Notes: a model not told the origin generated them from the letters alone. DNA of 64,000 nt from Octopus bimaculoides (GCF_001194135.2 NC_068998.1:16500297-16564296); one strand, 5' to 3'; positions 1-64,000 are shown, numbered from the stretch's first letter. Numbers and translations are program-made.

Positions 1-66
<66 letters not shown>
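1..66. repeat. (GT)n microsatellite
   Basis: Direct reading. Confidence 0.95.
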
Positions 67-68
<2 letters not shown>

Positions 69-148
69 ATATACATAAATGTATACATACATGGATGAGT
101 TAAAATGACAAATATGCTTGTTGCTAATACTGTAAAGTGGAGGATTAC

Positions 149-289
149 CTGGAACACATCTTGTCCTGTCAAAAGAATGTCTGAAGCCAGAGTCACATAT
201 GCAAATGTAGCCATCACATGATCTGGCCATGCAAGTTGAATGCAGTGGACATTCTGAACTGAGTCGGCAACCATTAAATATTAAGGGAA
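149..289 (-). CDS. Exon of a secreted Cys-rich protein: EGF/EB-like module (V)PLIFNGCRLSSECPLHSTCMARSCDGYICICDSGFRHSFDRTRCVP
   Basis: Minus-strand acceptor ttttttttcag, donor GTAATC; 141 nt, phase 1-1 and open; Cys spacing C-x5-C-x5-C-x4-C-x4-C-x-C-x12-C with CxCxxGF; symmetric phase-1 exons are typical of EGF-type modules. Confidence 0.85.
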
Positions 290-1429
290 CTGAAAAAAAA
301 ATCAACAAAAGGCATGTCATATCTTAAGATACACATATTCCATAAGTAAATAACAAGAAACAATATTAAATCTATATAAAACTATGGGTATATTTTAAAT
401 ATATGTATGCTTTGTATGCATGAAATTTATACTTATATTATGTATTTGGCACAAGCATGGCTTTATGGTTAAGAAGCTTGCTTTGCAACCACATGGTTTA
501 GAGTTCAGTTCCACTGCACAGCACCTTGGACAAGTGTCTTCTGCAACAGGCCTGAACTGACCAATGCCTTGTCAGTGAATTTGGAAGATGGAAACTGTGT
601 GGAAGCACATTGTGTATGTATGTGTGTTATATATATATACATATAAATATACATAGAAAGGGTGAGAGGGAGGGAAAGACAGAGAGATAGATTGGTAAAT
701 AGATAGATAGAGAGATAAATTGATAGACATAAGCTTTTATATACATATATATGTTATATTGATAATTATATACATAACTATATCAAGGGATCGGATGAGC
801 CTCTCCATGCATTAAAAATAGATGCCAAATGGTGCTAAAAACTGCCTTAAGTGTCCTATAGCACAGGTTTTATTTTGCGCTGACCACTTGATAAAATCAT
901 TAAAGTGATTTTATTCTTTGTTTTATATATATATATAGAGAGAGAGAGGGGGGAGGTATGTATGTTTGTTTGTGTTTGTGTATCTCTATTTGTATCTCTA
1001 TCTGTGTCAACCACCACTTGACAACTGGAGTTGGTTTGTTTACATCCCCATAACTCAGCACTTTGGTGAAAGAGACTGATAGAAAAAAAAAGTATTGGGG
1101 TTTTGCTTGATTAATTGTTTCATGGCAATGTCCTAGCATGTCCACAATCCAATGACTGCAAAAGAAACAATAAAATATATTATGAAAAACTATAACCACT
1201 ATAAAAGTGAGATCACAGCCATAGCCTATACTAGTGTCGCATAACCAGCCCATGTAAAAAGCACCATCCGAACGTGGCCGATGCCAGTGCCATTGGCTTC
1301 AGCTAGGTACAGTAGAGTTTGCTGTAACCTGCCTGGGCACTAAGAATAGAAAAATCTGGAACAACTATCAAAAAGCATTTGTACCACAATTCTAACAAAC
1401 AATTCTGACCAACCACAGCCCTGAAGAGA

Positions 1430-1920
1430 GGAGAAAGGGAGGAGAAAGGGTAAATAGGAAGGAAAGGAGGAGAGGGAGTGAGGGTGAAGGAGGAAATGTA
1501 GGGGGAGTGTGATGGGAGGAGGAGATGGAGTGAATTGGAGAGGGAGGGAGGAGATTGGAGAGGAGGGGAAGGAATAGGAGGGGAGTAGCAAGTGGAGTGA
1601 GAGTAGCAAGTGGAGTGGGAGTAGCAAGTGGAGTGGGAGTAGCAAGTGGAGTGGGAGTAGCAAGTGGAGTGAGAGTAGCAAGTGGAGTAGCAAGTGGAGT
1701 GAGTGGGAGCAGGAGTAGGAGGGTGGGGTGAGTGGGAGGAGAGGAGGAAGAGAAGCAAGAGGAGAGGAGGAAGAGAAGCAAGAGGAGAGGAGGAAGAGAA
1801 GCAAGAGAAGAGGAGGAAGAGAAGCAAGAGGAGAGGAGGAAGAGAAGCAAGAGGAGAGGAGTGGGAGAGGAGGAGGAGGAGGAGGAGGAGAAGAAGAAGA
1901 AGAAGAAGAAGAAGAAGCAA
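1430..1920. repeat. Polypurine block: 18-bp minisatellite (GAGTAGCAAGTGGAGTGR, ~6 copies), 23-bp minisatellite (GAGGAGAGGAGGAAGAGAAGCAA, ~5 copies), (GGA)n and (GAA)n
   Basis: Direct reading; accounts for the ORF-track entries between 1303 and 2054. Confidence 0.9.
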
Positions 1921-2790
1921 CAGACTTGGAATGGTATTTTAATTATGAACCTCCAAAAAGTGAAAGGCAAAGTTGACTTTGGTGGGATTTTTAATTGAGA
2001 GTGCAGAGACACAGAAGTAATAACACCACAAGGTATTCTATATGTTGTTCTCACAACTCAGTCAATTGACTGCCTTAGCTCAAGAATTATGACTGCTTCA
2101 TGTCAGAAACTTAAAGATTAGATGAAGACTCACTGGCAAAAAATATTATTCTTTTGTTTTAATCACAGTGACCTCTATATCAAAAAAAGGATCTTGCATG
2201 ATTAATTCTCTAAGCCAAGAAATAGAAGCATAGAAATCAGTGAATAATTATTTTTTGGTAATCTGTTTCATTTGAGCAATAAAACTGTACTGCCAGAGAT
2301 TAAGCACAAGATTCAAACAATAACTTGGATCATAATATATCTGGCAGTGGTCTCCAGCCATTTATTGCACCATGGATTGGTTTCTTGCAAGACAATTTTT
2401 CCACAGACCAGGAAATTACACATAAAAAAACACAAAGTGCATTGTATATAATCTAATGATTACATGCACACACACACAATTACATACATACATACATACA
2501 TATGGTAGGTGGGTAGGTATGTGTATGTATGTATGTATGTAAGTGTGTATGTATATAGGTAGGTAGGTGTATGAGTTTTACAAATGTGAAAAGTAGGATA
2601 TATGTGAAGTCAGAAGACAAAATCAGAAGCCAATAAAAAATATATAAAGGAAAGAAAGTGTGTGTGAATATATAGGCACATATAAAAGAGGGAATTCAAA
2701 AAGATCTAGTAGTGCCTTAAGAGCAATCTATCCAATGAAGTACCCTACTAGCACAGAGCTGTTGCGGAATCATATTTATTTATGTAATTA

Positions 2791-3288
2791 CACTGGGCAA
2801 TGAAAAACAAGTTTATTGTCTGCTACCCAATCAAGTACTAAATCAAGTATGCTGATTCTGAATCTAAACTCAGAATTGCTGTAGCACATCAGAATTTTAA
2901 GTTATGAACATAATTATATATTAATGCTATATTGATATCAGGAATAGTTAAGTTCAAGGTAAATAATTATTATAATAGTATATTAGTATTGTATATAGTA
3001 TATTCATGTTTAAGGCAAATAGTATCATAATATAATGGTACATAGTATATTTATGCTCAGGGAATCCTCACTTTATCTTTGATAAGCTGAGCTCAGAAAT
3101 GTTTTAGACACTTGCTCGTGTACTTATGCATCATGCTGGTCTCCCGTTTAAAGAACCAACAGTAAGTCACCCATCATGTGTGGATTGAACTGGCCTTGAT
3201 ACCTTGTTTCCATCTCAAATATGTCCTGGCGGAACCTCTCACCATGCTCAACACTAACAGCACCAAGATTAGTTGGAAAAGAATCAGC
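2791..3288 (-). mobile_element. DNA transposon 3' relic with a frameshifted transposase C-terminus (3288-3093)
   Basis: Minus-strand translation FPTNLGAVSVEHGERFRQDIFEMETRYQGQFNPHMMGD/YCWFFKRETS...KHF* resembles the widespread motif NLGAVSDEHGERFHQDI...RYQG...DYCW; 1-nt frameshift; candidate TA-flanked terminus CACTGGG at 2791; superfamily not assigned. Confidence 0.7.
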
Positions 3289-3414
3289 GAAAATTGCACG
3301 CATAATATAAAGTAAAAGTTATTCATTGGATCTTATTTGTTTCATAGAGTCAGAGTTATCTACTTCTATTCACACAATGCAGCCTGCTTCATCTCCCACA
3401 ATCAATAATGAAAA

Positions 3415-3830
3415 TATTCTTTTATTCTTTTACTTGTTTCAGTCATTTGACTGCAGCCATGCTGGAGCACCGCCTTTAGTCAAACAAATCGGCCCCAGGA
3501 CTTATTCTTTGTAAGCCTGGTACTTATTCCGTCAGTGTCTTATGCCGAACCACTAAGTTACGGGTACGTAAACACACCAATATCGGTTGTGAAGCGATGG
3601 AGTGGGGGACAAACACAGACACACACACACATACACAAGTACAAGTATATACATATATATACGACGGATTTCTTTCAGTTTCCGTCTACCAAATTGACTC
3701 ACAAAGCTTTGGTTGGCCCGAGGCTATAGTAGGAGACACTTTCCCAAGGTGTCACACAGTGGGACTGAACCCAGAACCATGAGGTTGGGAAGCAAGCTTC
3801 TTACCATACAGCCGCACTTGTGCCTATATG
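3415..3830 (-). mobile_element. tRNA-derived SINE, most abundant family in the window. Other copies at about 455-620, 960-1260, 5080-5615, 5910-6140, 8260-8730, 13035-13430, 21585-21860, 25550-25705, 26310-26420, 27005-27160, 27745-28040, 37985-38150, 58360-58530, 58810-59180, 62180-62570, 63375-63860
   Basis: Recurrent blocks GGCTGTGTGGTAAGAAGCTTGCT, AAGTGTCTTCTACTATAGCC, CTTGTGAGTGGATTTGGTAGA and CAGTCAAATGACTGAAACAAGTAAAAGA, with an internal (CA)/(TA) microsatellite. Confidence 0.85.
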
Positions 3831-4273
3831 TGCAAAATAAAAATAAAATCCAACATCAATTCAGTCTTTACACAACATAGTGAGTGAAGTGTTATTTGCT
3901 TATAAAGGTCACCAAAGACAAGTTGGTTTAGACATGTAGTATGTTATTCACTTAAAGGTGTCAAGTACAGAAAAGATGACACAGTCTATAAACTTGTCAA
4001 CAACTTATTTCACAACGAACAGATAAACATTGCAAGAAAATAGTAATTAAAAAAAATAGAAAAATAGAAAGTGGATAATGTTGTTGTTTTATGAAAGACA
4101 AACTATTTCAACAGAGAATCAACCGATATATACAAACAAAAACTTAATATACTTGTATCCCAAGTTTTGGTTTTTTAAACTTTTTTTTTGATCAGCGTTT
4201 AACTTCTGATTTCTCTTTCTCCATTATTTAGTTTTATATATTTGTTTACTTATTTATTTTATATTTATTTATT

Positions 4274-4311
<38 letters not shown>

Positions 4312-4699
4312 CGTGCATGCTGTGTAACAATCAGCTGACTCAGATACCAACAGTGGTATGTGCAGGAGTATGAGAAGGGTAACAGAACAAGGGATATCAT
4401 AAAATTTTCAGAACAAGCTCATTAATAATAAGTTTAGATCTTTGATAAAAAGGAACTCTTGTAAGAAAATTAATTAGGAATGACACAAATTGATAAAATG
4501 AACTTCAGTACAAAAAAATCAACTAGAACTGACAGAAAAAAATTCTGTAGCTTATGGGAAGATAGAAGGATAGGATTGAGGGCTGGGTCACTGAAAATAC
4601 TCAATTTCTATGTGAATCTGCTTTCTTAATTGTCGTTGCTTAGTTACCTAAAAATATAAAAAGGGTCGACCCTGACTGAGAAGACCTGTCACCAAAAGC

Positions 4700-5030
4700 A
4701 GATATAGGCAACCAGTGACACTTGTGCCAAATATAACCCTTCCGAGATCGTTGCCAGTGCCCCTGGAATGGCTTTTGTGCGGGTGGCACATAAAAGACAC
4801 CATTTCGAGCGTGGCCATTGCCAGTACCGCCTGACTGGCCTTCGTGCGGGTGACACGTAAAAGCACCCACTACACTCTCTGAGTGGTTGGCGTTAGGAAG
4901 GGCATCCAGCTGTAGAAACTCTGCCAAATTAGATTGGAGCCTGGTGTTGCCATCCGGTTTCACCAGTCCTCAGTCAAATCGTCCAACCCATGCTAGCATG
5001 GAAAGCGGACGTTAAACGATGAACGATAAT
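4700..5030 (+). mobile_element. Young SINE with RTE-like tail (GCATGGAAAGCGGACGTTAAACGATGATG). Near-identical copies at 22757-23100 (-) and 62660-63000 (-); older or partial copies at about 36770-37040, 48710-48880, 55380-55560, 56290-56520, 63165-63360
   Basis: Direct sequence similarity among copies. Confidence 0.8.
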
Positions 5031-5939
5031 AGTTTAAGGGCATACAGTATACAGCTTTCATTTTTTAATCTTTTATTTTTTAACCTTTTATTTGTTTCAG
5101 TGATTGGACTGCAGCCACGAAGGGCCATCATCCTGAAGGGTTTAGTCAAACAAATCAAAAGCAGTATTTTTTTTTTTTTTAGTTAGTCTGATATTTATTC
5201 CTGGGTCTCTTTTCTGAAACTGCTAAGTTATGGGGACATAAACAAACCAACACCAGATGCCAAGCTGTGGTAGTGGGACACATCCAAGCACACACACACA
5301 CACACACACGCATACGTGTGTGTGTGTGTGTGTGCATGCATGTGTGTGTGCATGCATGTGTGTGTGCATGCATGTGTGTGTGCATGCATGTGTGTGTGCA
5401 TGTGTGTCTGTGTCTCTGTATGTGTGTGTGTGTGTGTGTGCGTGTGTGTATGTACCACAGGCTTCCAAACAGATTTTGTCACCCAAATCCACTCAAAAGG
5501 CTTTTACTGGCCGGGGGCAGTAGTAGAAGACACTTGCCCAATGTGCCATGCAGTAGGACTGAACTCAAAACGATGTGGTTTCAAAGTGAACTTCTTAACC
5601 ACACAGCCATGCCCACATAATTTTTTTTTTCCCCATTTCTCAGGTGAAAAGACAGTAGCCATGATCCTCTATAAGTCATCCCTGAATGATGGACAAAACA
5701 AAAGTATCCTCACACTAGAAGCCTGACCTGAATGCAAACAACAGAATGTGTTCCATTAAAAGCAACGCAGGCATCAGGCAGTTGTGTCAGACCAAATGAT
5801 GGATTAAGTAGGCCAAGACAGAATTTGAACATGAAAACAAGAAAGAGCTGGAACAGATATTACATAACATCTTGCTCATCCAAACCTCTAAGAGCTGTGT
5901 TAATCCACTGTGCTAGATTGGAGGCAGTGGTGGGGGGGA

Positions 5940-5977
<38 letters not shown>

Positions 5978-6249
5978 ACAGGTTTCTTTCTTCTGCCAAA
6001 TCCACTCACAAGGCTTTGGTTGGCCAGAGGCTACAGCAAAAAAAAAAAACACCTGCCCAAGGTGCCATGCAGGGGGACCGAACTTGGAACCATGTGGCTG
6101 AGAAGCAAGCTTCTTACCACACAACCATGCCTGTGTCTACACAGAATATCATTCAAAAGTATTGAGTAGAAGAAAGACTTGTGTAAAAAATCAAAAGAAA
6201 TCTCAATTGAAGGAATTCAGTATCTTATATATGTACTTATTAGTATACA

Positions 6250-6800
6250 TGTGGAGGCGCAATGGCCCAGTGGTTAGGGCAGTGGACTTGCGGTCATAAG
6301 ATCGCGGTTTTGATTCCCAGACCAGGTGTTGTGAGTGTTTATTGAGCAAAAACACCTAAAGCTCCACGAGGCTCCGGCAGGGGATGGTGGCGAACCCTGC
6401 TGTACTCTTTCACCACAACTTTCTCTCACTCTTACTTCCTCTTTCTTTTGTGCCTGTAATTCAAAGGGCCCGCCTTGTCACACTGTGTCACGCTGAATAT
6501 CCCCGAGAACTGCATTAAGGGTACACGTGTCTGTGGAGTGCTCAGTCACTNNNNNNNNNNTGCTGTACTCTTTCACCACAACTTTCTCTCACTCTTACTT
6601 CCTCTTTCTTTTGTGCCTGTAATTCAAAGGGCCCGCCTTGTCACACTGTGTCACGCTGAATATCCCCGAGAACTGCATTAAGGGTACACGTGTCTGTGGA
6701 GTGCTCAGTCACTTGCCCGTTAATTTCACGAGCAGGCTGTTCCATTGATCGGATCAACTGGAACCCTCGATGTCGTAAGCGACAGAGTGCCAACAAAAAA
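6250..6800 (+). mobile_element. tRNA-head SINE (A box TGGCCCAGTGG, B-box-like GGTTTTGATTCC). Opposite-strand copy at 14750-15140; related heads at about 33535 and 34716
   Basis: Pol III box motifs; the two long copies align along their length. Confidence 0.8.
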
Positions 6801-6817
6801 GTATACATGACTCTTAC

Positions 6818-6851
6818 CTTGAGCAGATATTAATGGAAACAGTAACAAAAC
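6818..6851 (-). CDS. 34-nt exon encoding the end of a signal peptide (VLLLFPLISAQ+1)
   Basis: Acceptor ctttcttttacag, donor GTAAGA; phase 0 in, phase 1 out, which fits both neighbouring exons. Confidence 0.75.
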
Positions 6852-7218
6852 CTGTAAAAGAAAGGAATACACACATAAATTATAAAAGAAAAAAAAAGAT
6901 TAGGCATTTAAAGATTTAAAACATTAAATGTTGATCTTCTCCGATTCTGTTTACCAATCTAAGGCTGATGGTATATAACTAATCTATTCTCTTTATCATG
7001 TCAGATATAGAAAATAACATTTGGTACCGGTTTTGGTAGTTATTTTAGTTGCGTTTTTTAGTTTTGCTTTGGTAATTACACTGTGTAACACGATTTTTGT
7101 CCAGTTCAGAGTAAGTGTTGTAATCTCATCTCTTATATGATATGCTATGCCATGGAAACCAGGTTAAGGTCCAGTTTTATGAGCCCTAGGGTTTATGACA
7201 GACTTCTTTGCCTCCATC

Positions 7219-7268
<50 letters not shown>

Positions 7269-7278
7269 CCTCTCTCTA

Positions 7279-7327
<49 letters not shown>

Positions 7328-8412
7328 CACATGCTCTCTCTTGCTCTCTGTTCTAAACAAATGGAGACAACATAGAACAGAGACAATTCCTTAGTCTTTC
7401 TAGAAACAAAAGAATTCAAATCCTGCCAAAATCAACTTTGCCTTTTGTCCTTCTTCTGGGGATCAATAAAACAAATACAAGTCAAAAATCAGGGTCAATT
7501 TATTCAACACACACACACACACACACACACACAATATCTGGCATAGTGCATATATTAGGAACAAAAAAATCTAGCAAATGCTTTGTGTCGTCACTAAGAT
7601 ATAACAGTACCCTGCTTAAAAAAACACTTATCTACATTTTTTCTTCTGTTGTTTCAGATAAATTGCAAATATGATCAGCTGCTTAAGGAATTAGCTGCAG
7701 AAGATGTAGTTCCAGTTTCAAGATTTGATCCAGTTGTGTGGAATGTTGTGCAAATGCCATTAATGAAAATCTCAAGTAAACCCAACCCTTGCCAATAAAA
7801 TTGTGTAAATTATGAAATTTGTGCAAAGGCATATTGTATGGACAGTATCTATACAAATAAGTCCATAACTATTGTTAATATTTACTTTGTTACCTAGTTT
7901 AAGCCATTAGCATTCAGATTACTCTCTCAAATATAATGCTTATCTATTCACATCGTTTTGGATTAACCATGCATTATCTCATGACTTTGATAATTTGATG
8001 ATGTGATTGTTTATTTTTATAACGACATTGTAGGATATGTGTGAGAAGCCAGATCTAGTCAGTGTGAACATAAAACAGAATATTTGAGCTGGATGTGGCT
8101 GGTTTAAATGCTAAAAGGTTAACTCTATCACCTAGCCCTTGATCCTGTTACAAGCTCTTTCAGTTAAATTCTCTGGTCTAAGGAAAATTTTCCTCCCAGG
8201 GTGATGGTCACCCTGGAAGCCAGAAAAAAATTTGTAAAAAAAAACATAAAATAGAAATAACCATGACTGTGTGGTAAGAAGCTGGCTTCCCAACTACATG
8301 GTTCTGGGTTCAGCCCCACTATGTGGCACCTTGGGCAAGTGTTGTCTACTATAGCCTCAAGCCAACTAAAGTCTAGTGAGTGGATTTGGCAGATGGAAAC
8401 TGAAAGAAGCCC

Positions 8413-8467
<55 letters not shown>

Positions 8468-9436
8468 GTATATATATGTATATGTATGTATGTATATGTA
8501 TATTTCTATGTATGTGTGTTTTTGTGTATGTGTTTGTCCCCCACCACCACCACTTGACAACCAGTGTTGGTGTGTTTACATCCCAGTAAATCAGCAATTC
8601 AATAAGAGAGTTCAATAAAATAAGTACCAGGCTTTAAAAGAAAAAATGAAAACAGGCCTAGGGTCAATTTGTATGACTCAAACCCTTCAAGGTGGTGCCC
8701 TTGTATGGCCACAGTTAAATCACTGAAACAATTAAAAGATAAAAATATATCTGTTATGAGTATAAACCAGAGGACAAGTGAGAAAATGAGAGAAGGCCAG
8801 GTAACTCCAGCTTCAGGTATAAAGGCGCACAACATTTCCTCCGGATCTATCAAACCTGTCTAGGTGGGAACACCAGAAGGGATTTTACAACCCAACCCCA
8901 GGCACTGGAAACTTTTACTATGCTACTAATTTAAAGAAGATTAAGAAATAATTACAATGTGTAACACAATTTTTGTCCTTGAGTAGCAACTCTTATTTCC
9001 TATTTGCTTGTCTCTAGAAGGTATGAAAAATGGCTAATATTTCCTTCAAACTTTGCTTTTGTTATGATATTTATTCAAATCCAAAAGAATTCCTCTCAAC
9101 ACATCACTATGATGCTCCCCAACTGCTCCTGCTCATGATCAGAGAAGCATATATTGTCAGCCACTAAGGGACATGCTCAAGTGTTTATGGTCAAGCAACT
9201 TACAAACAAATTTGTGGTATTGAGCAGAATATTTGCTTTAACAATATTTTTGCTTCAGCAACTCAGCACTGAATCTGTCTGAAATATAATGGAAAATAAG
9301 TCAGTTTCAAAGCAGGTCACAAAAGCAAAGTCTGAAGGTAACAGAAGTCATTTCCTTTGATTTCTAGATAGAAGCAAATAGGGAGTAACAAAAATAATTG
9401 TTACAGTGTCAACTGTACAATAATTGCAGTAATTAC

Positions 9437-9484
9437 CTGTAAAAGTATACATTGGAGTAAATTATCCCACACTTTTTCTACCAT
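9437..9484 (-). CDS. First coding exon (MVEKVWDNLLQCILLQ) of the secreted EGF/EB-like protein
   Basis: caacATGg Kozak context; ends CAG|GTAATT at phase 0. Joined with 6851-6818 it gives MVEKVWDNLLQCILLQVLLLFPLISAQ, a hydrophobic signal-peptide-like stretch. A possible acceptor (ctcttttaaag) would start this exon at 9602. Confidence 0.7.
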
Positions 9485-9699
9485 GTTGAGTGCTCAGTGA
9501 GTTGATGTTATGTGTTCCAGTAGTTAAAGGTACAATCCCTTTGAGAAGGTGTACAGATCCTTAAATTTTAGGGTTCCTTAAAGAAAGGTGCAATACTCAA
9601 TTCTTTAAAAGAGGGTGTTGACTTCTCTAGCTACACTGTGTTGTTAAAGTGATGTCCAGTAGAGATGATACATTAGACTACTGCAATAACTGCACTGTG

Positions 9700-10056
9700 T
9701 TTAGTGGTGGTGGTGGCGGTGGCAGTGGCAGTAGAGGTAGTGGTGGTATTGGTAGTGGTGCTGGTGCTATTGCTGATGCTAGTGTTGGCAGCAACGGTGG
9801 CAGTTGTGGCTGTGGTAGTAGTGTAGGTGGTGGTGCTGGTGCTGGTGGTGCTGGTGGTGCTGGTGGTGCTGGNNNNNNNNNNNNNNNNNNNNNNNNNNNN
9901 NNNNNNNNNNNNNNNNNNNNNNNNNNNNNNNNNNNNNNNNNNNNNNNNNNNNNNNNNNNNNNNNNNNNNNNNNNNNNNNNNNNNNNNNNNNNNNNNNNNN
10001 NNNNNNNNNNNNNNNNNNNNNNNNNNNNNNNNNNNNNNNNNNNNNNNNNNNNNNNN

Positions 10057-10110
<54 letters not shown>

Positions 10111-10286
10111 ATGTGTCTGTAAGATTTGCCCCCTTAATTTGGAACAAACAGGTAGAAGCGGTTCATGGCAGCGCCATACTGAAGAGGTAATCAAGTAGAT
10201 TGGTGATGTGACCAAGTGGAACACTTAACACACCTTTGTTATTACAAGAATAATAATAACAATACTACTACTACTACTACTACTAC

Positions 10287-10339
<53 letters not shown>

Positions 10340-10731
10340 TTAGAAGAGAGCAATGATGATTTTTTTTACTTTAAAAAATATATAGATTTGTTTGAAGATA
10401 TTTTTGGAGAAGTCGAAAATCCTTGTGAAAAACCCATTTATATGGCTGGTAGACACGTTCAGGTAACACAGTCTGGTATTATAAGCAAATATTTGGAAGT
10501 TATGTAGCACAGAGATGATTTAGGTGTTATTGCCACTGTCACATCCCTTTGTTTGTCATCTAACACAAACTTCAGTTCCATTACGCCCACCATTGCCATG
10601 AACTCCAACACCTCCAACCACACTGACTCAGCAAACAAGCACCAATATCATCATCATCATCATCGTCATCATCATCATCACCACCACCACCACCCACATT
10701 AACCTTCTTCCTCTTCTCCCTCATCATTATT

Positions 10732-10771
<40 letters not shown>

Positions 10772-10977
10772 CTACCACCACCACCACCACCACCATCACC
10801 ACCATTACCACTACCGCTATCACCTCAACCACCACCACTATCTGTATTATCATCATCATCATCATCACGACTACCTTGTAACTATCACCACCACCATCAT
10901 AATCACAATCACCCCATTGCCACTAACATCACCACCACCACCACCACTACCACCATCATCATCATCATCATCATCAT

Positions 10978-11023
<46 letters not shown>

Positions 11024-11060
11024 GTCACCTTCACTACAACACCATCACTACAACTACCAC
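9700..11060. repeat. Low-complexity cluster: degenerate (GGT/GCT)n, (GT)n, (TAC)n(TAA)n and long (CAT/CAC)n
   Basis: Direct reading. Confidence 0.9.
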
Positions 11061-11587
11061 CAACAATACCAGAGACGTTTTTTGAAGCATTTATGCCACT
11101 CAAAACATAGCATATGACCCGTTGCCTTATCACCATAAGCTTGTCAGAGCATGCTCAATATCTCTGGAGCAGACTTCCCAAGTTTAACACAAAATTTCAC
11201 ACTGCTTCTGTGTTTCTATCCATGACAAAATTGCAGACTACAGCATACGTGTGATCACAAAAACACAAATTTCACAACTTGTATGTATGCAGGTATGTAC
11301 ATATGTATATGTGCATGTGTGTGTATGTGTATGTGTGTGTGTGTGCGTGCGTGCATGTGTGTGTGTGTAAGTACACTTGTCTCAGCATCCTGTAATACAG
11401 CATCATACAAATGATGTTCATTTCCAGTCTTCCATGAAAAATATATCTGGTCAGGGAAAATATTACATTGCTTGGAAACAAGTGAGGGTTAGCAACAGGA
11501 AGGTCATCCAACTGTGAAAATTTTACCTCAGCAAATTCTGTCTGACCCATACAAGCATGGAAAAGTGGACATTAAACAACAATGACA

Positions 11588-13265: not shown

Positions 13266-16200
13266 CATATATATGACAGGCTTCTTTCAGTTTTCATCTA
13301 CCAAATCCACTCACAAGGCTTTGGTCGGCCTGAGGCTATAGTAGAAGACACTTGCCCAAGATGCCATGCAATGGGAATGAACCCAGAACCATGTGGTTGG
13401 TAAGCAAGCCACTCCTACTTACCACTCATTGCACAAAGAATTTTAATAACTTTGTTATTAACCTCGTTATTAAAATTATTCGTCCACAAACAGTGAACTG
13501 ACAGAATCCTTAGTGAATCAGAAGAATGCTTTGTGGTATTTCTTCTGGCTCTTTACATTCTGAGTTCAATCCCTGCCAAAGTCAACTTTGCATTTCATGC
13601 TTTCGGGGGGATGATAAAATAATGTAGCAATCAAGTACTTGGGCTCATGTAATTGACTTACTTCCTCCCTTCAAAACTGCTGGCCTTGTCCCAAATTTAG
13701 AAAGAATTGAAAGGATTCTTTACACTGACAGTTGGAAGGAGGAAGAAAACAACAAGAATGAGTGCTCAACACCATATTGGTGGATAAAATTTCTTTATTT
13801 GTGCATTAAGACTACCATTGGTTTCATGTAAAGAGAAATATCTTGATATCTTAATTTTTCAAGCTGACCACATGGAGGCATGGTGTTCATCTCCATTTTG
13901 GATGAAAGCACAAAATATATTTAAAACATTTTGGATGAAAACACAATATATATTTAAAACATTTATTTATATATATATGCAACACATAGTAAATTCTTGG
14001 CCATCTAGACACCTCTGTATGGAATTACTTGTTCTGCATACTTAGAAAATATAACTTTCAACAGGACACCCAAACTGTGCATGCTTCACTCACATTTCAG
14101 AAAAACTATGGTGAATCTACAAGTAATCAAGGAAAGCTCTACTATGTCAGAAACTTCCAAAATGGAAGCCCTTTTTATAATAAAGAGAAATGTGACATAA
14201 CTGCATCAAACTCATGAAGAGCAGAGGCATGTCCATTACTTTAATCTTCTGTATGCATTTATATGGCCACATGCAAAAAGTTAAGTCCAGATTTCCAAAA
14301 TATTCTTAATAAATAATGAAGGGAAATAGAGTTATTAAACATAATTGTCAGAGAAGTAGAGTTGTTAAAAGTCAGGGAAATAGAGTTGTTAAACATAATT
14401 GGCATTGTGCCAAAATTTAAAACATCTATTAGTGAAACAACGGATCTTAAAAACTTCTGAGAAGATAATCTTCATATAAAAGTTGTGATGGGTGTGAGGA
14501 AAACAAGTAGATGCATTTGGTCTAATTATAGCATTCATCAACAAGCGCTACACCTTAGATAGGTAGACTTGTTGCATGAATGACTAATTGTGTTTTTCAA
14601 ATCCACATATCAAATGTAAATGAAGAAATGTCATTTACTCTATTATATGCCAATAGGAATTGTATGCCAGCCTGATCAATTTGATTCAACAAGCATTGGA
14701 TCCAAATACACAGGAAAGAAAACTATATTTATATTTCACTAACATGCATTGTTGTTGTTGGCACTCCGTCGCTTACGACATTGAGGGTTCCAGTTGATCC
14801 GATCAACGGAACAGCCTGCTCATGAAATTAACGTGCAAGTGGCTGAGCACTCCACAGACACGTGTACCCTTAACGTAGTTCACGGGGATATTCAGCGTGA
14901 CACAGTGTGACAAGGCTGACCCTTTGAATTACAGGCACAACAGAAACAGGAAGTAAGAGTGAGAGAAAGTTGTGGTGAAAGAGTACAGCAGGGTTCGCCA
15001 CCATCCCCTGCCAAAGCCTTGTGGAGCCTTAGATGTTTTCGCTCAATAAACATTCACAATGCCCGGTCTGGGAATCGAAACCACGATCCTATGACCGTGA
15101 GTCTGCTGCCCTAACCACTGGGCCATTGTGCCTCCACTCTAACATGCATTAACCCTATAGCATTCAGAATACTCTGTCAAATGTAATGCTTATTTATTCA
15201 CACTGTTTTGAATTAATCATGTAATATCTTGTAACTTTGAGATTTTGATGACATGACATTTTATCTTTAGAATGATATTGTATAGTAGATATGAGAAGCT
15301 AGATCTGACCAGTTTGAACCTAAAACAGGTAGAATATTTTGGCCAGATATGGCTGGTTTAAATGCTAAAGAGTTAAACAATAGATTTGATAGTACTTTAA
15401 CCGGTTTACATACGAGACTATGTGTACAAATATCATTAAGTTTGCAAATATCACTCCCTAGAACAGTTGCATGTCTCATATAAAAAAAAAATACAGTCAT
15501 GAATGAAATCTTTTTAATCTTGAGTATGCTCTGTCAGGACTGACCAATGATGAAAAAAGATTAAACAACAACTACCTGAAGCTAATGGTGGAGACCTCTG
15601 GGTGATCAGATGAACTACTAGGAATAACAACCAATACTACATCAAATTATAACTTGCTGTCTTGAAAAAGAGAAGGACACATTGGATAATGTGATCCTAA
15701 ATAAACTACATCTGAAACAAAAACAAAAAAAAAAGGAATATGTCAATCACATTTGAGATGGGGGGAGGCCTTTCCTGATAGTTCTGCTAAATAAGAGCTG
15801 ACTGAGACTAATCAACAACATCAAAAGCAATAAGGCCTAAATTATTAAGTGCCGTCAATAAATAAAGTCGTACTAGTTGATATTAAGGACGCTGTTTGGT
15901 TATTCAGTGTGTGAATGTGTGACATAAATATCCAAATAGGAAACATGATGATTACAGAATAACAACAACTGGCTAACTTTGTTTCGCTTGATTAACAACA
16001 AATTTTAAAACTATATTAAAAAAAAAACCCACTGGGAATAATAATATGAATGTGTGGAGGGGTGTAACTATGAGAATGTGTGCACCATATCATCATCATC
16101 ATCATCATCATTATCATCATCATCATCATTATTAACATTTAACATCCATCTTCTATGCTAGCATAGTCAGATAGTTCAACAGGAGCTGGCAAGTTAGAGG

Positions 16201-17990: not shown

Positions 17991-41450
<23,460 letters not shown>

Positions 41451-48127: not shown

Positions 48128-49582
48128 CAACTTAAAGTATCACAAAAGCATAAAACTATTAGTGGCCCTTTTGATTTTGTATTAGATATTTGTCTGACAC
48201 TGGATGGAGTACCTTTTTCGTTGATTCTACCAATATTGGATATATATATATGTATACGTGTATATATATATATATATATATATATAGAATCACAATTAAA
48301 GGTTACAAACCTCATTCAGGGATAGCAAAATCCTATGAAAGTACTGGTTAGTTACCTATACAAAGAATATTGAACATTACATTTAATACTCAACTGCAAG
48401 GTAACTATATAAACCGTGGTTTATGTGTGTGTGTGTGTGTGTATGTGTGGCCGTGTGTATAAAATTCAGGGTTAACTGTTCAGAGGAAAGCACTTACAAC
48501 TAAGAGTCAATATAATGAATGCAACAAAAAGTTTTTTATTTTTATTTCATCTGGAGTCAATCAGGGATTGGTTGTAACAAAAGGTGAGTGGACTCTTATT
48601 CAACTAATTCCTGATGTATCAAGACAAAACAAAATACCTTTTCTTAGATTCATTATTTTTATCAATTAACTATAAATAAATAAATACATATATATTTATA
48701 TTATATCATCATCATCATCATCGTTTAACGTCCGCTTTCCATGCTGGCATGGGTTGGATGGTTTGATGAGAACTGACAAGCCAGGAGGCTGCACCAGGCT
48801 CCAATCTGATCTGGCAAGGTTTCTACAGCTGGATGCCAACCACCCTGAGAGTGTATTGGGTGCTTTTTACGTGCCTAGGAATGTTGTTGACAGTGACTGC
48901 TCAGTTTCAGCCATTTAAGCTATTGTCAGACTGCCAATGATGGCTTAACTGGTTGAAACTTTGAAGTCATTGTCAACAACATTTTTATAGAAGAAGAATA
49001 AATTTGCACTCTACAAATGTATAGAGTAACCCATCAGATTAATGTAAAATTGTTTTCTTTATAACTGAACATGAAAACAAACATTAATATATCTAATATC
49101 TATTTAATCTATATATAGAGAGAGAGGGGGGGAAGATAGACAGAGATGGACAGCATGTGTATGTGTGTATATAAGTAGTATGCAAATATGTATGTATGTA
49201 TGTAAGTGGTATGTATGTGTGTATGTATTTGTATGCAAGCATGTATGTACATATGTACAGTAGAAACTCGTTTTGTGAATGGAAATGTTATTGCAAATTC
49301 AAATCTAAATACAGAAAGCAGGGGAGATAACTCCTACGAATTTTTGAAAAATGACAATGCAGAGAGAGAGCCTTATCTTCGTCGTCAAATGTAAAAAACA
49401 TCAAATATGTTTTGTTTTTGTTAAATCTCCTCAGTAAAGCCATATTCACTAGCAATTGTCTTCACTTAGAATGATAAGTTTCATCATTATCTTCAAATTC
49501 ATCATTATCAACACCACCACAACTTTATTACACCACTATCATCATCATCATCATCAACAGCAACAATAACAACAGCAGCAGC

Positions 49583-61934: not shown

Positions 61935-64000
61935 TTAAACCAGCCAAATCCAGCTCAAATATACTACCTGTTTTATGTTCTAACCCGCCAGATCCAGCCT
62001 ATCACACCTACCCTTCAAGGCCGTCATAAAATATACAAACACATTATCAAAATTTCAAAGCTACAAAATAATGCATAATTAAATAAAGATAACTTGAATG
62101 AAAAAGTATTACATTTGACAGAATAATCTGGATGCTAACGGTTAAATATCACTCTCTCATTCAAGCACACACATAATACATATCTTTTATCTTTTACTCA
62201 TTTCAGTCACTAGACAACAGCCATGCTGGGGCAGCCTCAAAGAATTTTAGTTGAACGAACTAATCTCAGTGCTTATTTTTTTTTAAAGCCTGGTACTTAT
62301 TCTATCATTTTCTTTTGCTGAATTGCTAAATTACAGGGACATAAACACACCTACACCGGTTAAGCAGTGATGAGAGGACAAAGACAGACACATACACACA
62401 TATATATGATGGGCTTTTATTAGTTTCCATCTATCAAATCCACTCACAAGGCTTTGGTCAGCCCAAGGCTACAGTAGAAGACACTTGCCCAAGGTGCCAC
62501 ACAGTGGAACTAAACCCAAAACCATGTGGTTGAGAAGCAAACCCCTTACCACACTGCCATATTTGCACCTTTTTTCCTTTGTTTTGCTTGCTTAAGTCAT
62601 TGGACTACAGCCATGCCAGGGCACCACATTGAAGGGTTTAGTTGAAAAACCAACCCCAGTCATCATCATCATCGTTTAACGTCCGCTTTCCATGCTAGCA
62701 TGGGTTGGACGATTTGACTGAGGACTGGTGAACCAAATGGCTACACCAGGCTCCAATCTGATTTGGCAGAGTTTCTACAGCTGGATGGCCTTCCTAACGC
62801 CAAACTCTGAGAGTGTAGTGGGTGCTTTTATGTGCCACCGGCACGAAGGCCAGTCAGGCGGTACTGGCAATGGCCACGCTCAAAATGGTGTATTTTACGT
62901 GCCACCTGCACAGGAGCCAGTCCAGCGGCACTGGCAACGATCCCGCTCGAATGTCTTTACACGTGCCAGGAAGGCGATGCTGGGCACAGGTGCCATCACG
63001 GGTCTAGTACAGAAGTATCAGACTGAAAGCAATACCTCAATCCCAACTAGCCTTTTAGGAAAAAAAAAGTTTTGCTGAACTGCTAAGTTATTCAGGATGT
63101 AAAGAAACTAACACCTGTTGTCAAGTGGTAGAAGGGAAGGAAACAAACACAAAGATACATATGTGTATACCTGTGGCATGTAAAAAGCACTTAGTACACT
63201 CTGTAAAGTGGTTGGTACTAGGAAGGGCATCCAGCTGTAGAAATCTTTCCACAACAGACAATTTGGAGTCTGGACAGCTCCCTGGCTGGCCCACTCCTTT
63301 CAAACCAGACAACCTACGCCAGCATGGAAAATAAACATTAAACGATGATGATGATGATGATAATATATCTTTATGTATTCATTTATTCTTTTACTTGTTT
63401 CAGTCATTTGATTGCAGCCATGCTGGAGCACCACCTTAAAGGGTTTTTAGTTGAAGAAATCAATCCCGGGACTTATACTTAGTAAGCCTAATACTTATTC
63501 TATCAGTCTCTTTTGCCGAACTACTAAGTTACAGGGATGTAAACACACCAACATCAGTTGTCAAGCAATAGTGGGGGCACAAACACATAAATAAATAAAT
63601 AAATATATNNNNNNNNNNNNNNNNNNNATATATATATATATATATATATACATACATATATACACATACATACAACAGGCTTTTTTTCAGTTTCTGTCTA
63701 CCAAATCCACTCCCAAGGCTTTGGTCAGCCCAAAGCCATAGTAGAAGACACTTGCCCAAGGTGCCATGCAGAGAGACTGGCCTAAGGTGCCATGCAGTGG
63801 GGCTGAACCCAGGACCATGTGGTTGGGAAACAAGCTTCTTACAACACAGCCACCTGCAACTATACATATATGTCAGGTTTCAATGGGGTTCCACACAATT
63901 TCCCTCTACTATATTCACTCACAAGGCATTGGTCAGCCCAAGGTATTGCAGAAGACACTTGCCAAAAGTATTGCGTAATGGGACTGAACCCTGAATCCGA

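Follow-up and report, generated by a model that had tools for sequence, protein, structure and literature searches.

The DNA analysed here, a stretch of 64,000 nucleotides (nt) from Octopus bimaculoides (GCF_001194135.2, NC_068998.1:16500297-16564296) that is referred to at its full length as the window, very probably (a probability of about 0.9) holds the 5′ end of the orthologue of the gene that encodes the Octopus sinensis protein XP_036365453.1. The gene is read on the minus strand, where three exons of 48, 34 and 141 nt, with canonical splice sites and consistent phases, join to a peptide of 74 residues, MVEKVWDNLLQCILLQVLLLFPLISAQVPLIFNGCRLSSECPLHSTCMARSCDGYICICDSGFRHSFDRTRCVP, plus one base. 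These exons had been proposed in an earlier inspection of the DNA made without database searches (the sequence-only reading), and their joined translation reproduces the 74 residues given there exactly. The interpretation placed on them, namely the start of a spliced gene in which an intron splits the signal peptide ahead of an EGF/EB-like module, is borne out by XP_036365453.1, whose gene has the orthologous three exons and whose N-terminus aligns with the peptide without gaps across both junctions (70 of 74 residues identical). No named orthologue had been recognised there; one exists, as XP_036365453.1, which shares the N-terminus and the three exons, carries the RefSeq name "fibrillin-1-like". 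The finding is correct but ordinary, because an orthologue with the same N-terminus is already present in RefSeq and the gene is thus known from O. sinensis.

An exhaustive phmmer search of 1.84 billion representative proteins returned 23 relatives. One cluster among them holds O. sinensis proteins, of which XP_036365453.1 and XP_036365454.1 ("fibrillin-1-like" isoforms X1 and X2, of 1095 and 1089 residues) start with MAEKMWDNLLQCIFLQVLLLFPLISAQVPLIFNRCRLSSECPLHSTCMARSCDGYICICDSGFRHSFDRTRCVP/ASNILEKC... (slashes here and below mark boundaries), and the window peptide differs from the O. sinensis protein by the four substitutions V2A, V5M, L14F and G34R. At the DNA level the reference is the O. 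sinensis locus CM016873.1:25506333-25577162 (L001, cited below by its own coordinates), with which the window is collinear from 13609 down to 69 (L001 1 to 21078) at a non-coding identity of about 85-91%. The annotated coding sequence (CDS) in O. sinensis consists of orthologous exons that use the same AG/GT sites, and their join gives residues 1-74 of XP_036365453.1 exactly. The first, at L001 10001-10048, is the CDS start of XP_036365453.1 and matches the window at 44 of 48 positions, with three non-synonymous changes and one synonymous change; the second (L001 12670-12703) matches at 33 of 34, with one synonymous change; and the third (L001 20858-20998) matches at 139 of 141, with one synonymous change and one exchange of Gly for Arg.

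The O. bimaculoides database products found for this gene are downstream fragments only (264, 183 and 250 residues), and these are 91-93% identical to O. sinensis, a divergence close to that seen for the window. The three exons of the window would allow such fragments (183-264 residues) to be joined into one full-length model, and they illustrate that the 5′ end of a gene can be recovered by eye from the raw sequence of a fragmentary octopus assembly. A word-index protein search with the 74-residue peptide gave no matches, and neither did one with the first 188 residues of XP_036365453.1, which missed even that protein although it is in the collection; both negatives are therefore uninformative and provide no evidence that the 5′ part is unannotated. 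A literature search on the accessions and on the EB module in molluscs returned no paper that mentions the gene and nothing relevant.

Exons and introns of the 5′ end

The coding part of exon 1 (E1) is located at 9437..9484 on the minus strand; its 48 nt start with the ATG and hold 16 codons (MVEKVWDNLLQCILLQ). The start codon lies in a Kozak-like context, with A at -3 and G at +4, and is preceded three codons upstream by an in-frame TGA. E1 ends at the phase-0 donor CAG/GTAATT at 9436, where intron 1 begins (6852..9436, minus strand; 2585 nt, phase 0), which splits the predicted signal peptide and has a counterpart of 2621 nt in O. sinensis. Exon 2 (E2; 6818..6851, minus strand) is only 34 nt long and encodes VLLLFPLISAQ and the first base of the Val-28 codon, between the acceptor ttcctttcttttacag/G and the donor AAG/GTAAGA. 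Intron 2 (290..6817, minus strand) measures 6528 nt as assembled, is in phase 1 and contains dispersed repeats and an assembly gap; its O. sinensis counterpart is 8154 nt long. Exon 3 (E3; 149..289, minus strand) has 141 nt and is of phase 1-1, so that it completes the valine codon and reads (V)PLIFNGCRLSSECPLHSTCMARSCDGYICICDSGFRHSFDRTRCVP before contributing the first base (G) of the next codon; it is bounded by the acceptor tttttttttcag/TT and the donor CAG/GTAATC. From this donor (G/GTAATC) the start of intron 3 occupies 1..148 of the minus strand and reaches a (CA)n microsatellite where the window ends.

The gene was expected to continue past position 1, and it does so in O. sinensis, where exon 4 begins 3493 nt beyond the E3 donor. 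The window stops 148 nt beyond that donor, so the next exon lies outside it. The description of the gene as invisible to the track of open reading frames (ORFs) also holds: neither E1 nor E2 is long enough to be listed, and the open frame around E3 (3..323) is missing from the track because it extends past the end of the window. Two other ways of reaching E3 were considered. Direct splicing of E1 to E3 is ruled out, as the phases do not match, and the single-exon ATG starts able to splice to E3 are all microsatellite-derived junk.

Chance, conservation and alternative starts

A chance arrangement of the three exons is rejected by simulations, by the ranking of splice sites and by a conservation test. 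The EGF cysteine pattern has a single match in a six-frame scan of the window, at E3, and appeared in 0 of 300 order-3 Markov simulations. On splice-site scores taken from a self-made, rough donor and acceptor matrix, not a trained cephalopod model, E2 comes first of only 10 candidate internal exons within 30 kb upstream of E3 (score 17.3; runner-up 13.4). Among all sites on the strand, the E2 donor is placed 5th of 3520 and the E2 acceptor 10th of 3478. E1 is the fourth-best combination of an ATG with a phase-0 donor in the approximately 33 kb scanned upstream of E2 (to 40000), as well as the closest to E2. E3 is clearly constrained, because it differs from O. sinensis at only 2 of 141 bases, compared with a divergence of about 11% in the introns around it (binomial P = 1.2e-5).

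The view that the three exons are a decaying remnant, either a pseudogene or a gene that has lost its 3′ part, or else assembled by chance, could draw on the small number of coding bases visible in the window (223) and on the fragmentary assembly with its 9 gaps. It is nevertheless extremely improbable. Neither the frame nor the ATG nor any of the five splice sites is disrupted, E3 is constrained relative to the introns, synteny with a full-length annotated gene extends over 13.5 kb, and downstream fragments of the O. bimaculoides gene exist at the level of identity given above; the chance variant is further opposed by the absence of the EGF motif from the simulations.

Several observations weigh against assigning the window to this gene. 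The O. sinensis gene models were predicted automatically, and all later exons lie beyond window position 1, so that downstream intactness and the transmembrane anchor are read from O. sinensis only. The module in the window, taken alone, stays below every Pfam gathering threshold. E1 is conserved no better than the introns (4 of 48 bases changed), for which reason it rests on the orthologous annotation and on its splice and Kozak context only.

The position of the translation start was weighed against two alternatives. In the first, E3 is a real coding segment that is translated unspliced from an in-frame ATG at 320-318 (MTCLLLIFFSVPLIFNGC...), and E1 and E2 are chance look-alikes. The open frame around E3 indeed runs from 323 and includes this ATG, the T-rich acceptor tract translates to a hydrophobic, leader-like stretch (MTCLLLIFFSVPLIF...; MTCLLLIFFSV...), and an in-frame ATG is present in O. 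sinensis too, one codon later. Such a stretch of Leu, Ile and Phe is however merely a translated polypyrimidine tract, and the annotated O. sinensis CDS is E1-E2-E3. The rank of E2 among the internal-exon candidates and its near-complete conservation also speak against an unspliced start, as does the oyster homologue described below, in which the signal peptide has an exon of its own, ending ...CAA G/gt at the matching phase-1 position, and the module is immediately preceded by a true acceptor. Translation from the ATG at 320-318 is thus very unlikely, and the spliced start in E1 is retained. That read-through from this ATG mimics a signal peptide is a caution for the spotting of leaders in T-rich introns.

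The second alternative places the start of the main product at Met-48 (MARSCDG...), reached from another promoter or 5′ exon and without a signal peptide, since the O. sinensis isoform X3 (XP_036365455.1, 1048 residues) begins exactly there. A product of this kind would begin inside the disulfide module and could not enter the endoplasmic reticulum (ER) despite at least 100 cysteines and 29 sequons; moreover, isoforms X1 and X2 carry the full leader, and the X3 start looks as if the first ATG had been picked automatically from a 5′ transcript that was incomplete or alternative. Little weight can be given to this possibility, and initiation at the E1 ATG is again preferred. The same O. sinensis sequence has been deposited twice, as "fibrillin-1-like" X1-X3 and as "uncharacterized protein LOC115219958" X1-X3. 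The LOC115219958 isoforms start at Met-165 (MFECITT...), and "fibrillin-1-like" X3 starts at Met-48, an internal residue in the midst of the first module; incomplete evidence for the 5′ transcripts probably gave rise to both starts.

Predicted signal peptide, first module and predicted architecture

The hydrophobic core of the leader spans residues 9-25 approximately (Kyte-Doolittle 12-mer maximum 2.8), and the sequence ISA/Q fits the -3/-1 rule by eye. In the predicted signal peptide, E1 would accordingly supply the n-region together with the first part of the h-region, and E2 the c-region and what remains of the h-region, with cleavage likely at ISA/QV, after Ala-26. Bivalve and annelid relatives likewise have a hydrophobic leader at the N-terminus that ends 5-7 residues before the first cysteine.

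E3 encodes an EGF-like module of seven cysteines, the first module of the first repeat unit. Its cysteines are spaced C-x5-C-x5-C-x4-C-x4-C-x-C-x12-C, with CP at the second, and it contains the PROSITE EGF_2-type signature CICDSGFRHSFDRTRC (C-x-C-x2-[GP]-[FYW]-x4,8-C; core C-x-C-x2-G-F-x8-C), which is the sole match in six frames mentioned above. An alignment with 14 modules from O. sinensis, bivalves, an annelid and two unidentified database contigs has seven invariant cysteine columns, with Pro13 present in at least 90% of sequences, and a module consensus of xIxxxCxxHxxCPxxAxCRPxxCDGYxCxCxxGFxxSxDRxxC.

Taken by itself, the window peptide scores below the cut-off of every Pfam model. Its scores, with the cut-offs in brackets, are 16.1 bits (29.3) for hEGF, 14.6-16.4 (27) for EGF_MSP1_1, 11.5 (27) for EGF_CA and 14.5-16 (24.3) for EB (PF01683). 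Dumpy_DPY (PF21164) reaches 17.3 bits on residues 35-52, below its cut-off of 27, and the corresponding PDB profile match, 1oig, has E = 0.21. A profile search of PDB sequences with the module returned almost exclusively EGF domains (DLL4, factor IX, thrombomodulin), all weak (E of at least 0.06). The AF2 (AlphaFold2) model built from the family alignment, a confident one with a pLDDT (predicted local distance difference test score) of 88.9, contains a two-stranded beta-hairpin (16-21/25-30). Almost all of its top Foldseek matches are EGF domains (Pfs25, RIPR, fibrillin calcium-binding EGF (cbEGF), MSP1-19, factor IX), none of them significant at such a small domain size (E of at least 0.15, TM score 0.45-0.6).

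When exon 4 of O. sinensis is appended to E3 of the window, an EB match of 37.6 bits (cut-off 24.3) appears, and it begins at the last cysteine of E3. As the EB match is completed only by the off-window exon, the module is best described as EGF-like and leading into an EB module. The EGF/EB-like designation given to it earlier is sound in this sense, with the EGF cysteine pattern at E3 and EB above threshold once exon 4 is added. The Pfam check proposed for it had a divided outcome: the window peptide by itself passes no EB or EGF threshold, and both the E3-E4 join and the full orthologue do so for EB.

The remainder of the protein was read from the orthologue. XP_036365453.1 scores 190 bits for Pfam EB over 12 stretches and has 104 cysteines, 29 N-glycosylation sequons, five copies of the 7-Cys module and an Asn/Asp-rich spacer. 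A strongly hydrophobic 19-mer at about 1050-1070 is followed by SRKK and a short basic tail. By extension, the product in O. bimaculoides would carry about five Cys-rich repeat units and, unless it is shed, be a type I membrane glycoprotein. The protein had been called secreted, which is correct only in part, as the orthologue has a C-terminal transmembrane helix and a short tail.

A working model of the product may be outlined as follows. The signal peptide encoded by E1 and E2 would direct the nascent chain into the ER co-translationally and would probably be cut after its last residue, Ala-26, and E3 would then supply the first disulfide-bonded EGF-like module. The next, off-window exon should be of phase 1 and encode (A/G)SNILEKCDFSDNCPP... 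(a continuation of the form A/G-x-N-I-L-E-K-C). Further exons would add EB modules (about five Cys-rich units), the Asn/Asp-rich spacer, one transmembrane helix and a cytoplasmic tail of about 25 residues, and the anchor would display a rigid, disulfide-rich ectodomain on the cell surface. A role in binding or organising at the cell surface or in the extracellular matrix may be envisaged, as the architecture alone would suggest.

Comparison with known Cys-rich proteins helps to place this product. The EB module was first described in proteins of C. elegans. The O. sinensis orthologue consists almost entirely of EB matches, and the module in the window is EGF-like and placed before an EB module. 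With EGF-like domains such as factor IX EGF2, DLL4/Jagged, Pfs25 and fibrillin cbEGF it shares the signature and the predicted two-stranded hairpin; it differs from them by having seven cysteines instead of six and by lacking the calcium-binding consensus. Fibrillin-1 resembles the orthologue as a Cys-rich extracellular repeat protein with EGF-like folds, but the orthologue differs from it by its transmembrane anchor. A Pfam scan of the full orthologue found EB only, plus a sub-threshold cEGF; it detected neither a TB/8-Cys domain nor an above-threshold cbEGF array. The name given in RefSeq, "fibrillin-1-like", is therefore a misnomer that arose from weak similarity, applied to what appears to be an EB-module membrane protein.

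Relatives, conserved exons and surrounding sequence

Relatives were found in the bivalves Saccostrea, Magallana, Mizuhopecten, Argopecten and Potamilus, in the chiton Liolophura, in the gastropods Haliotis and Elysia and in the annelid Owenia, along with a weak match in a springtail. The gene had been suggested to belong to a mollusc- or cephalopod-restricted family. A restriction to cephalopods is wrong, as the N-terminal layout is shared by homologues from bivalves, a chiton, gastropods and the annelid Owenia. In several relatives the leader is directly followed by the module. Their automatic names are inconsistent and include "fibrillin-1-like", "MEGF6/10", "prion-like Q/N-rich protein 25" and "integumentary mucin".

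The bivalve homologues (Saccostrea XP_062612009.1, Magallana gigas K1PRW9, Mizuhopecten OWF36501.1 and Potamilus KAK3578370.1) resemble the octopus protein in that a signal peptide is followed at once by a 7-Cys module (LIFEKC... against LIFNGC... in octopus), that a phase-1 intron comes after ...SQ/AQ (here the slash separates alternative residue pairs), that EB modules are present and that several have a type I transmembrane anchor. They differ in that identity is only about 40-45%, that the signal peptide is encoded in one exon, and that an LDL-receptor class A domain and long, Ser/Thr-rich, mucin-like regions are added, both of which are lacking in the octopus protein.

The exon structure of this combination of leader, 7-Cys module and EB modules is strikingly conserved across molluscs. 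In the oyster Saccostrea cucullata (XP_062612009.1, LOC134273817; locus L003) the leader is a single exon of 58 nt ending ...TCT CAA G/gtatga, in phase 1. The module exon has exactly 141 nt, is of phase 1-1 and reads tttacag/CT CTT CTA ATA TTT GAG AAA TGC ... TGT GTT CCA G/gtaaga. The octopus counterpart has ...GCT CAA G/gtaaga, and then cag/TT CCC TTA ATA TTT AAT GGT TGC ... TGT GTT CCA G/gtaatc. A second, oyster-like contig (L002) has the acceptor and donor around the module at the same positions as octopus and Saccostrea. Since these positions and phases recur in Saccostrea, and the positions also in L002, the boundaries of E3 and the intron that separates it from E2 are ancestral. The octopus leader has one extra phase-0 intron, intron 1, which is absent from the oyster homologue. 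There is about an even chance that these proteins represent an unnamed, lophotrochozoan-wide family of type I membrane glycoproteins (leader, 7-Cys EGF-like module, EB modules) in which a first-module exon of 141 nt and phase 1-1 has been kept since before the split of bivalves and cephalopods, and which may be a distinct class of cell-surface or apical-matrix receptors under misleading names.

Intron 2 includes an assembly gap that, with its flanks, occupies 6398..6713 (no strand assigned): 10 N at 6551-6560 lie between two identical copies of 153 nt (6398-6550 and 6561-6713; 153 of 153 positions). The gap is probably an unmerged overlap of two contig ends joined with Ns and not a true tandem duplication, in which case the true intron 2 would be about 163 nt shorter. 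The frame and the continuity of the coding sequence are unaffected, because the gap lies between E2 and E3 and is intronic. The duplicated 153 nt at 6398-6713 belong to a dispersed repeat, which has a further match of 84-89% at L001 26624-27004.

The composition of the window (36% GC, many microsatellites and dispersed repeats, nine N gaps) is that of a eukaryotic draft assembly, and an Rfam scan of the window gave no matches. Long "ORFs" at 1303-2054, 9649-10224 and 10581-11136 are translated simple repeats (poly-Leu/Ser/Pro, Gly/Ala and poly-Met), some of which cross N gaps, and are not genes. A dispersed repeat of about 310 nt has several copies in the window (62660-62968, 22697-23071, 48671-48875 and others) and at least 6 in the O. 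sinensis locus, at an identity of about 80-88%. A second element, similar to a short interspersed element (SINE), recurs beside microsatellites throughout the window.

In O. sinensis a second gene on the same strand, at L001 1-70830 (a product of 623 residues with Pfam DUF4659), spans the whole 70.8-kb locus, so that the EB-module gene appears to be nested in an intron of a larger gene. Exons of this host gene (DUF4659) were not found in the window; a 95%-conserved block at 13426-13609 has no open frame. Further downstream in L001, on the opposite strand, there is a CRAL_TRIO/UBA_Pinta gene.

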